DNA from: Octopus sinensis
Lineage: Eukaryota
Direction of reading: 5' to 3'
NCBI RefSeq assembly: GCF_006345805.1
Contig: NC_043010.1
Coordinates: 50,158,001 to 50,222,000, forward strand
Length of the DNA stretch: 64,000 bases
Below, one piece after another: positions 50,601 to 51,896 of this stretch. Position 1 is the stretch's first letter; the number at the start of each line of letters is the position of its first letter. The translations under genes and the position numbers were made by a program. Below the pieces are notes generated by a model, which was given only the letters and a program-made list of their open reading frames with translations, made no database searches and was not told where the DNA came from.

Positions 50601-51896
50601 GTATGACTCGGGAAGGATTTTATGCTTTTTTTTATATATATAATAGGCGTAGCTGTGTGATAAGAAGCTTGCTTCCCAACCATATGGTTCCGGATTCAGT
50701 CCCACAGCGTGGCACCCTGGGCAAGTGTCTTTTGCTATAGCTTAGGGCTGACCAAAGCCTTGTGAGCGCATTTATCAGACGGAAAATGAAAGAAGCCCGT
50801 CATAAATATATAATTACATACATACATACATACATACATACATACATATATATATATATATATATATATATATATATATATATATATATATATATATATA
50901 TATATGTATATATATATTAGAAAAAAACACCTTTTATCAATTCAAAAATGAAAAACTAAATTATACCATTTAGAAAAATGACATATAGAAAGATTAAATG
51001 TAAGATAAAACATATAACAATGATTAAGTAATGTGCAAAATAATAAATAAAACGTATATATTTGGTAGAATAACGACACGTGTTTCGTGGCTATATTTAA
51101 GAAATGATAATAGTAATAATAATAGTAAAATCACGTCAATATAAATATAGCCACTCTTCAGGTTGAAGATAAAAACTATAAAATGATTAATTAGATAAAT
51201 TAATGAATATACGTAAATAATCTTGTGAAATGCGAAATATCTTAACAAATATATTCTTGTTTAAATAAAAAAATAGAATAAAAATAAGATACAATTAATT
51301 AAAATATTTAAAACAAATATATATATATAAATATATATATATAAACTACAACATATACATTAAGTGAAAACTAAATACTACAATTATTATTATTATTATT
51401 ATTATTATATATATAGACACACACACACACACGCATATAATATATGTATGTGTGCGTGTGTGCGGGTGTGTTTGTATTCCTGCATTTCTCCTCCACTACC
51501 GCTTGACAATTGGTGAAGGTGTGTTTATATCCCCATAACTTAGCGGTGTTCGGCAACAGAGACCGACAGAATAAGTATCAAGCTTTCAAAAAACACTATG
51601 TACTGGGGTCGATTCGTTCGACCAAAACTTCTTCAAGGCGGTGCCCCAGCATGACCGCAGTCTAATGACTGAAACATGTAGAAAGATAAATAAAAAAAAA
51701 ACATTAAAAATTGGATTTACTACTTTACAAAATAAAATAGTTGGAAAGATTTTGAACTTACGACAATAGGAATTTGCGGCGGATAAAGATATCCACAGAT
51801 TGAAAACAAGTAATATGCTGATAGTTCTCCTCATTATTTTGCTGTTGTTGTCCATTTTAAAAACTTTTATTTTATTTCGGTGATGCTGTTGGTCTC
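29533..51896 (-). CDS. Secreted (yolk-type) ferritin gene, multi-exon; about 208 aa with the seven well-supported exons and about 230 aa if three more micro-exons are real
   Basis: Exons 51762-51855, 47895-47971, 42139-42285, 40330-40365, 39372-39407, 35684-35788 and 29533-29664 have phase-compatible GT donors and AG acceptors and give the ferritin four-helix-bundle motifs in order. Confidence 0.9.
32284..35070 (-). mobile_element. Decayed Penelope-like retroelement (RT present, 3'-truncated before GIY-YIG) in a ferritin intron
   Basis: Fragments [66 protein letters not shown] and HPRY, with frameshifts. Confidence 0.9.
34367..34595 (+). mobile_element. Family D SINE inserted into the Penelope element
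   Basis: 16-bp TSD AGATTAATAATTTTTA (34351-34366) / AGATTGATAATTTTTA (34596-34611). Confidence 0.85.
35684..35788 (-). CDS. Ferritin helix C exon (NKID)[31 protein letters not shown]
   Basis: Polypyrimidine TAG acceptor and GTAAGT donor at the conserved DPH/L intron position; AMxxAxxLEK motif. Confidence 0.9.
36069..37109 (-). CDS. Three candidate ferritin micro-exons: 37090-37109 (20 nt), 36504-36521 (18 nt), 36069-36106 (38 nt)
   Basis: Each has an AG acceptor and GT donor; chained they read [25 protein letters not shown] but then need the downstream AG at 35779-35780. Confidence 0.35.
37152..37460. mobile_element. Non-autonomous DNA element with ACCTCCGCC / GGCGGAGGT termini
   Basis: Inverted termini at 37152 and 37460. 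Confidence 0.5.
37940..38180 (+). mobile_element. Mariner transposase C-terminal relic
   Basis: [10 protein letters not shown] ... RNECTKF*NRIEA-like translation. Confidence 0.5.
39372..39407 (-). CDS. Ferritin micro-exon [13 protein letters not shown]
   Basis: TTTTTTTGTCTAG acceptor and GTAAGT donor; 36 nt, phase 0-0; paralogous to micro-exon A. Confidence 0.7.
39590..40196. mobile_element. Non-autonomous Helitron-like repeats (partial 39590-39760, fuller 39813-40196)
   Basis: ATACTAGCAGTATCGCCCGGCGTTGCTC start, internal AAATTTCATCAGAATCGG-like motif, ACAGAC repeats at the end; this layout resembles animal non-autonomous Helitrons. Confidence 0.5.
40330..40365 (-). CDS. Ferritin micro-exon [13 protein letters not shown]
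   Basis: TTTTCTTTTGTCTAG acceptor and GTAAGT donor; 36 nt, phase 0-0, no stop. Confidence 0.7.
42139..42285 (-). CDS. Ferritin helix B exon [49 protein letters not shown]
   Basis: 147 nt, same length and boundaries as vertebrate H-ferritin exon 2; TTTCAG acceptor and GTAGGT donor. Confidence 0.95.
43264..45830 (+). mobile_element. Decayed R4/Dong-type LINE (N-terminus and RT)
   Basis: [61 protein letters not shown] and AINTWAV fragments; C-terminal piece at about 46490-46740. Confidence 0.85.
43560..43948 (-). mobile_element. Full-length family A SINE inserted in the LINE
   Basis: 14-bp TSD ACAACATAAGAGAT at 43546-43559 and 43949-43962. Confidence 0.9.
46795..46935. mobile_element. Mariner terminal fragment
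   Basis: TATGAGGGGGTGCTGAAAAGT terminus. Confidence 0.5.
47895..47971 (-). CDS. Ferritin helix A exon (L)[25 protein letters not shown]
   Basis: Poly-T CAG acceptor and GTAAGT donor; 77 nt, phase 1 to 0; matches the QINxELxASYxY motif. Confidence 0.9.
48983..50250 (+). mobile_element. Tigger/pogo transposon relic, 3'-truncated and interrupted at about 49736-49900
   Basis: Psq-type HTH ([10 protein letters not shown]...MSRTTVSTI), CENP-B HTH (IIQEKAL...[10 protein letters not shown]), start of the DDE domain ([16 protein letters not shown]); GATACCTCGACTTA terminus. Confidence 0.85.
51072..51164 (-). ncRNA. Canonical-core minimal type I hammerhead ribozyme motif (Penelope-type)
   Basis: AAC-CTGAAGA-GTGGCTATATTTA [42 nt] TAAATATAGCCAC-GAAA-C-ACGT-GT-C-GTT; perfect 13-bp stem II, palindromic stem III ACACGTGT, GUC triplet. 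Confidence 0.7.
51762..51855 (-). CDS. Ferritin first coding exon, signal peptide [31 protein letters not shown]
   Basis: Basic n-region, hydrophobic core and SAA cleavage motif; phase-1 GTAAGT donor after 51762; possible acceptor before 51896. Confidence 0.75.

Follow-up and report, generated by a model that had tools for sequence, protein, structure and literature searches.

A 64,000-nucleotide (nt) stretch of the Octopus sinensis genome (NC_043010.1, positions 50,158,001 to 50,222,000; hereafter the window, with positions counted from its first letter) carries on its minus strand, at 51164-51072, a hammerhead ribozyme motif with a complete core, in sense orientation in the first intron of a predicted ferritin-like gene. 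The motif is real, and it lies at the coordinates first proposed for it by a reading of the letters without database searches (the sequence-only reading). It is probably a solitary type I hammerhead motif that stems from a repeat and has an enlarged loop 2; its RNA is predicted to adopt a non-cleaving fold, and the intron would carry it as a passive passenger. The coordinates of its parts and of the other features are collected in the table below.

Read base by base, the motif is AAC-CUGAAGA-(stem II of 13 base pairs (bp) with a 42-nt loop)-GAA-ACACGUGU-C/GUU, where the slash marks the predicted scissile bond, and its minus-strand surroundings are 5'-...UAUCUUC AAC CUGAAGA GUGGCUAUAUUUA (42 nt) UAAAUAUAGCCAC GAA ACACGUGU C/GUU AUUCUACC...-3'. 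Every core nucleotide can be read directly and in the right order (C3 U4 G5 A6 N7 G8 A9, G12 A13 A14, A15.1-U16.1 and H17), which bears out the full CUGAAGA/GAAA/GUC core that the sequence-only reading had seen on the ferritin-sense strand; the A at core position 7 is also present in natural relatives of the motif. Helix II is a perfect 13-bp stem closed by G10.1-C11.1 and loop 2 is 42 nt long and microsatellite-like, both as originally described, and self-BLAST shows that the loop resembles (ATT)n-type repeats elsewhere in the window. As a monomer, helix III has 2-3 bp and a palindromic ACGU loop (AC-ACGU-GU). Helix I has only 3 bp, the next positions being A-C, U-U and U-U. The position of the bond relative to the core places cleavage between 51075 and 51074, in agreement with the earlier prediction of a cut after 51075. 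A structural descriptor (the core words, at least 4 bp in helix II, at least 2 bp in helix III and at least 3 bp in helix I) has a single match in the 128 kb formed by both strands of the window, and this match is the candidate site. Two other readings of the hairpin were dropped: a foldback element or miniature inverted-repeat transposable element, as the inverted repeat stops at 13 bp, and a microRNA (miRNA), for which the sole match (mir-994, E-value 1.4) is far below threshold.

The core and helix III of the candidate recur in environmental sequences. A scan of metagenome contigs with the pattern CTGANGAG-N(8-38)-CGAAACACGTGTC returned 76 type I hammerhead motifs in 74 contigs, all sharing the 13-nt string CGAAACACGUGUC with the candidate; CUGAAGAG is present in several of them. 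Total length is 31-33 nt in 57 of the 76, whereas chance would spread the lengths evenly over the permitted gaps. When 53 of these motifs are aligned, a 6-bp helix I arises from the flanks and a 4-bp helix II from the interior, neither of which is set by the pattern: the cells of helices I and II are paired in 94% of cases, compensatory changes are seen in 9 of 12 pairs, and the pairing score was reached by none of 500 shuffles, with no slid register coming close. Because its core and helix III are identical to those of motifs that covary in this way, we assign these two parts of the candidate to a genuine and widespread natural type I family; coincidence is a much less likely source of the candidate than descent from a motif of this family. 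Loop 2 of the environmental relatives is 4-9 nt long, against 42 nt in the candidate, and the patterns for exact relatives (CTGANGAGTGGC...GCCACGAAACACGTGTC) had no match in metagenome and viral contigs. Two of the environmental contigs hold two hammerheads each with identical flanks: L004 has two identical copies 1103 nt apart (67-99 and 1170-1202), and L064 has two copies 1415 nt apart (930-962 and 2345-2377) that differ by one loop base. Tandem units could give such pairs, and so could circular molecules whose assembly ran past their ends.

Covariance models recognize little of the candidate. None of the Rfam hammerhead models (Hammerhead_1, Hammerhead_3, Hammerhead_II, HH9 and HH10) reached its gathering score in the window, and at E-values of up to 10 no Rfam hammerhead family matched within 50400-51800; the only matches in these searches were microsatellite-driven noise from miRNA models. 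The 42-nt loop is probably one reason for the lack of a hammerhead match. A model built from the 53 environmental relatives (R1) aligned only 11 nt of the candidate, GAAACACGUGU, with 12.1 bits (E-value 0.2). The short helix III with its small palindromic loop is a trait of canonical type I hammerheads that the candidate shares, but the candidate has no loop 1, its loop 2 is far too large, and the architecture of helices I and II differs, so that the word 'canonical', used in the sequence-only reading, does not describe it.

Hammerhead-like motifs are frequent in octopus DNA: taking motifs and relics together, we found roughly one per 20-60 kb of the sequence examined, which included O. bimaculoides loci fetched via Penelope proteins. 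The window itself has a minimal motif of the Penelope type near 63497, within a repeat that aligns closely over ∼100 nt with an O. sinensis locus (L077; 188 alignment columns in all, mean column identity 83%); in the window copy the helix III region is altered and there is no helix I. DNA beside the relic at 5153-5214 (5265-5342) is 82% identical to part of a self-complementary O. bimaculoides element of ∼500 nt (L001:2723-3226), which carries a hammerhead relic of its own, and this element looks like a retrozyme-like family common to octopus species. Closest in style to the candidate among the octopus examples seen is a complete AT-rich type I motif of O. bimaculoides (L079:116-64), whose helix I has 5 bp and whose helix III is a palindrome of 8 nt. 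A near-hammerhead in intron 3 has its core register broken by one extra A. Judging from these sequences, octopus hammerheads come in several architectures (canonical, Penelope-type minimal and AT-rich) and lie within genes as well, in both orientations; because such motifs are common, one sense intronic copy with an intact core is unremarkable. In the literature searched, no paper describes these architectures for cephalopods, apart from one that counts the Rfam matches of the giant squid genome.

Could the motif be an ordinary AT-rich, microsatellite-associated inverted repeat that happens to be flanked by CUGAAGA, GAAA and short complementary stretches? First-order Markov copies of the window gave 0.077 matches per window with a loose descriptor, and one of 300 such windows had a match with a stem II of at least 8 bp. 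Because real DNA holds far more hairpins than a Markov chain (the window has ∼5 non-microsatellite perfect hairpins of at least 13 bp, and tens of thousands of shorter ones), we also ran a decoy test on the maximal hairpins of the real window, counting those whose flanks are made up of the same letters as CUGA-GA and GAAA, whatever their order. For a specific arrangement with a stem of at least 8 bp, and before any demand on helices I and III, 0.0056 are expected against one observed; demanding helices I and III scales this by ∼0.12, and a palindromic helix III by 0.014. The combined expectation is ∼7e-4 per window, or 8e-5 with the palindrome. Scaled up to a few-Gb genome, the decoy estimates still leave room for chance motifs, numbering between a few and a few tens, and scanning many windows would surface such cases; no relative of the flanking sequence was found, as would be expected of a coincidence. 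We nevertheless regard coincidence as quite improbable: besides the low expectation per window, the candidate shares both G10.1-C11.1 and its exact helix III sequence with the natural covarying family, although the descriptor asked for neither, and the frequency of genuine motifs and relics in octopus DNA makes descent a priori far likelier.

The predicted folding of the motif (ViennaRNA, 105 nt) is not that of an active ribozyme. The minimum free energy is -25.9 kcal/mol, and the hammerhead-competent fold, at -16.7 kcal/mol, costs +9.2 kcal/mol. Helix II always forms in the predicted ensemble (pair probabilities 0.78-1.0), but the pair probability is ∼0 for helix I and ∼0.01 for the monomer helix III; the caveat on the 3-bp stem I raised in the sequence-only reading was correct, and it is the main problem for activity. 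The CUGAAGA box pairs instead with the upstream UCUUCA in a 6-bp hairpin (pair probabilities 0.66-0.998), which precedes helices II and III in the order of transcription. By this prediction, next to none of the RNA would be in the active secondary structure. A homodimer is predicted at -61.3 kcal/mol, against -51.8 kcal/mol for two monomers (2 x -25.9), with an 8-bp intermolecular ACACGUGU helix III; helix I, which a double hammerhead requires, is still not formed in it. We found no distal helix I partner within 1.5 kb of the motif, as a discontinuous hammerhead would have; neither a further copy of 50900-51300 anywhere in the window nor a tandem arrangement at the motif (self-BLAST and repeat finding gave only microsatellite matches); and no second motif with the same helix III in the window, which extends 51 kb to one side and 13 kb to the other, where an active dimer of the Penelope type would call for a copy in tandem or within 50 kb. 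With a 3-bp helix I, a masked core box and no second copy, little or no self-cleavage of the intron is to be expected.

A ribozyme that works in its intron would cut the nascent pre-mRNA 686 nt into intron 1, either alone with the help of proteins or tertiary contacts or as a double hammerhead between two nascent transcripts. It would compete with splicing and yield less mRNA, an effect that has been suggested for amniote intronic hammerheads and for the CPEB3 ribozyme. The complete core, the G10.1-C11.1 pair, the lack of any disabling substitution and the sense orientation fit such a ribozyme, as do the perfect helix II and a palindromic helix III that dimerizes in silico; core and helix II are also better kept than neutral decay of a relic predicts, and a 3-nt helix I can suffice in vitro if helix III is long. 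There is precedent for an intronic ribozyme whose cleavage rate is matched to transcription and splicing (PMC10919898). We consider it unlikely all the same. In the monomer helices I and III are essentially unpopulated and the CUGAAGA box lies in the hairpin transcribed first; the dimer leaves helix I unformed and, as the gene has no second sense copy, needs two separate transcripts; and no hammerhead covariance model accepts the motif. Loop-loop contacts are required for hammerhead activity at physiological Mg2+ (PMC4209133), and with no loop 1 and a 42-nt loop 2 they are absent here. Penelope-type motifs with a short helix I cleave poorly, the monomers not at all and the dimers weakly at non-physiological Mg2+ (PMC4209133). 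The sequence-only reading had the motif, if active, cutting the pre-mRNA about 690 nt after the first coding exon: the distance stands (686 nt), but an essentially unpopulated active fold and the lack of a partner copy in the window speak against the cut. A regulated form of the ribozyme, in which helix II and its large loop act as a module (protein-bound, edited or temperature-sensitive) that frees the CUGAAGA box, so that cleavage tunes the output of secreted ferritin, seems to us highly improbable.

The reading we favour is that of a non-cleaving passenger derived from a repeat. The candidate would probably descend from hammerhead-bearing repeats, retrozyme-like or Penelope-related, that are scattered in octopus genomes; an originally short helix II (about G-UGGC/GCCA-C) would have gained an AU-rich, self-complementary, microsatellite-like expansion that gave the 13-bp stem and the 42-nt loop, and the motif would now be a neutral passenger that is removed with intron 1. 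We infer that it has no effect on ferritin expression. Vertebrate retrozymes are depleted from introns, which their authors attribute to selection against genic insertion (bioRxiv 10.64898/2026.07.22.740005).

Several points weigh against this reading. Secondary-structure energies ignore tertiary contacts, proteins and co-transcriptional kinetics, and the engineered asymmetric hammerheads of Tabler et al. (1994) were reportedly active in vitro with a 3-nt helix I and a long helix III. Copies of the flanking sequence were found neither in the window nor in 107 kb of Octopus loci, and when the 480-bp AT-rich block was compared by BLAST with five Octopus loci, all matches were of low complexity, so that descent from a repeat family is judged from the motif itself. 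Preservation is moreover uneven: the core, helix III and the 13-bp helix II are without defect, while helix I has three pairs. Had a helix I of 6 bp decayed neutrally and uniformly, damage would be expected in the rest of the motif too, which means that helix I was always short, that one of its strands was lost by rearrangement, or that the hairpin is young or constrained.

The loss of a strand has a specific form, in which the element ends at C17 (51075) because it was the 3' end of a self-cleaved and reverse-transcribed monomer; the true 3' strand of helix I would have been lost at integration, and GUU would be accidental. Such an end accounts for a sequence that is intact 5' of the cleavage site and yet has a 3-bp helix I, and, from pairing frequencies, three consecutive pairs would arise by chance in ∼5% of cases; the motif moreover lies in a 465-bp AT-rich block between two microsatellites, with a possible 19-nt direct repeat flanking it. 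However, no complement to the 5' strand UAUCUUCAAC occurs within 1.5 kb upstream, where the monomer would be expected to start, the direct repeat does not end at 51075 and is of a type that is often a chance match, and no family consensus defines the ends of an element. We regard an end at C17 as distinctly unlikely.

The host gene was located by tblastn with vertebrate ferritins, which found ferritin-like exons on the minus strand. In the resulting five-exon model every junction is GT-AG, the phases are compatible, and the open reading frame encodes 184 amino acids with a hydrophobic, signal-peptide-like N-terminus; the product matches positions 2-142 of 142 of the Pfam Ferritin family (E-value 1.7e-20). 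By this model the motif lies 686 nt into intron 1 and in sense to the predicted ferritin-like gene, the placement that the sequence-only reading had given it. The E/Y/EE..H residues of the protein line up with the ferroxidase positions of H-ferritin. A query of 85 amino acids from exons 3 and 5 against a collection of 5.8 billion proteins (with Octopus proteomes) returned no Octopus protein and one fragment with 62% identity, and the predicted gene seems to be unannotated. Four local reading frames were looked up for orthologous loci, with none on record. An assembly gap of 100 N lies at 21576-21675 of the window.

Within intron 1 the motif sits in the AT-rich block mentioned above (∼20% G+C), with further microsatellites nearby, and a short interspersed nuclear element-like repeat with an (ATAC)n(AT)n tail ends near 50920. 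The 19-nt direct repeat (50952-50970 and 51367-51385, 84% identity, 415 nt apart) flanks most of the block; it may have arisen as a target-site duplication, or AT-rich sequences may match here by chance. Repeats of the window are up to 98% identical to an O. sinensis locus and up to 96% to an O. vulgaris locus.

Features of the window and of other octopus loci (positions are those of the window unless a locus is named; strand relative to the deposited sequence)
Feature	Position	Strand	Basis or remark
Helix I, 5' strand, AAC	51164-51162	-	Pairs with GUU 51074-51072
Core box CUGAAGA (C3-A9)	51161-51155	-	Direct reading
Helix II, 5' strand, GUGGCUAUAUUUA; G10.1 = 51154	51154-51142	-	13 Watson-Crick pairs with 51099-51087
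Loop 2, 42 nt, AU-rich, (AUU/ACU)n-like repeats	51141-51100	-	Direct reading
Helix II, 3' strand, UAAAUAUAGCCAC; C11.1 = 51087	51099-51087	-	Direct reading, folding
Core G12 A13 A14 (GAA)	51086-51084	-	Direct reading
Helix III, 8-nt palindrome ACACGUGU (A15.1 to U16.1)	51083-51076	-	Direct reading
C17, nucleotide 5' of the predicted scissile bond 51075/51074	51075	-	Position relative to core
Helix I, 3' strand, GUU	51074-51072	-	Direct reading
Competing hairpin UCUUCA-ACC-UGAAGA	51169-51155	-	Minimum-free-energy fold
Exon 1, start codon and signal-peptide-like N-terminus	51855-51762	-	Gene model
Intron 1, host of the motif	51761-47972	-	GTAAGT donor at 51761; polypyrimidine tract and CAG acceptor at 47972; phase fits exons 1 and 2
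Exon 2	47971-47895	-	Gene model
Exon 3	42285-42139	-	Gene model
Exon 4	35788-35684	-	Gene model
Exon 5	29664-29533	-	Gene model
Tigger/pogo-type transposase fragment	49432-50058	+	CENP-B_N E-value 5e-13, HTH_Tnp_Tc5 E-value 5e-8; intron 1, ∼1 kb from motif
Penelope-like relic, frameshifted	34568-32795	-	ADKG motif and reverse-transcriptase motifs, no GIY-YIG part seen; intron 4, gene orientation
Penelope-type minimal motif CUGAUGA-A-GGCUGG...CAGUC-GAAAC	63440-63520 (∼63497)	-	Bulged A after A9, 6-bp helix II
Penelope-type motif CUGAUGA-A-GGCUGG...UCAGCC-GAAACGU, i.e. ...UCAGCC-GAAACGUU	O. sinensis L077:3740-3860 (motif ∼3760)	+	
Hammerhead-like relic	5153-5214	+	R1 17.1 bits, E-value 0.005
Hammerhead relic, canonical architecture, core mutated	O. 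bimaculoides L001:3093-3147		R1 26.6 bits; within the span and on the strand of a called gene
Hammerhead-like motif	O. bimaculoides L079:19979-20031		R1 26.2 bits
Decayed relic CUGAUGAG...CGAAA...UC	47632-47690	+	R1 16.1 bits, E-value 0.01; antisense, intron 2
Hammerhead-like relic	13889-13828	-	R1 12.5 bits
Near-hammerhead: CUGAAGA, 6-bp helix II (A-U at 10.1/11.1), GAAA, perfect 10-bp hairpin ACAAUCUAUC/GAUAGAUUGU	36507-36590	+	Antisense, intron 3
Complete AT-rich type I motif UGAAC-CUGAAGA-UUGCA UAAA UGCAA-GAA-AGUAUACU-A-GUUCA	O. bimaculoides L079:116-64	-	

The sequence-only reading had also called the palindromic stem III typical of dimer-acting Penelope hammerheads. The palindrome is there, and natural hammerheads of the animal type are marked by such a helix III (PMC4209133), but the link to Penelope is not supported. 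The motif is not visibly borne by a Penelope element: there is no adjacent element, no bulge after A9 and no partner copy in the window, and the octopus motif of the Penelope type is a different sequence. The sole Penelope-like relic of the window lies ∼16.5 kb from the motif, and no hammerhead was found around it (31.5-36.5 kb, one core mismatch allowed). Likewise, two O. bimaculoides Penelope genes with 10-kb flanks showed no hammerhead beside the reading frame, and a tblastn search with four Penelope proteins had no match in any of the 74 environmental contigs, none of which encodes a Penelope reverse transcriptase (RT). The best protein matches of the Penelope-like relic are from Octopus (the best from O. 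bimaculoides, 80% identity), and a perfect 21-bp inverted repeat (35014-35062) lies just upstream of it.

Sequence-perfect hammerhead cores occur as isolated copies inside octopus genes, curated models miss such cores when a loop has expanded, and an intact core is not in itself evidence of activity. If the motif did cleave, the small set of ribozymes known to be embedded in genes would gain an invertebrate counterpart, and the contest between self-cleavage and splicing could be approached through it; if it were regulated through its helix II module, molluscs would have their first functional hammerhead embedded in a gene.

Among known systems, the candidate shares the core, G10.1-C11.1 and a helix III of 2 bp with a palindromic tetraloop with the canonical metazoan type I hammerheads (non-LTR retrozymes, i.e. 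those lacking long terminal repeats (LTRs), and the newt and schistosome satellites; PMC7229834, PMC4209133). It differs from them in its proportions: in canonical hammerheads of animals helix I measures 6 bp and helix II 4 bp, and the loops interact (PMC4209133), with a loop 2 of 4-9 nt that touches loop 1, where the candidate has 3 bp, 13 bp and 42 nt; they also sit in tandem repeats of 150-450 bp, whereas the candidate has no tandem copy in the window. With the minimal type of hammerhead found in Penelope-like elements (Cervera and De la Pena 2014) it has in common a long helix II, a short helix I and G10.1-C11.1, and also palindromic 15.x/16.x positions and loop 3, with the dimer need that these would entail (PMC4209133). 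The Penelope motifs, however, have a helix II of 7-8 bp, a helix I of 4-5 bp and a bulged base after A9 (PMC4209133), that is, an unpaired nucleotide between A9 and G10.1, which in the candidate follow each other directly with G10.1 paired; they usually have no helix III loop, and they come as paired copies in pseudo-LTRs beside an RT/GIY-YIG frame, whereas the candidate has no adjacent element or partner in the window.

Like the amniote intronic hammerheads HH9 and HH10 and the CPEB3 ribozyme, for which cleavage in competition with splicing is the proposed effect (PMC10919898), the candidate is a small motif of the self-cleaving kind in sense orientation in an intron of a protein-coding gene. 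Those ribozymes combine conservation across species with stable helices, tertiary contacts and efficient cleavage, while the candidate matches neither the HH9 nor the HH10 model of Rfam. The double hammerheads of newts and viroids are tandem copies in one transcript with a stable helix I, where the candidate is a single copy whose helix I has 3 bp in the dimer; what it has in common with them (Forster et al. 1988, cited in PMC4209133) is a weak palindromic helix III that can be replaced by an extended intermolecular one, predicted here to be 8 bp long.

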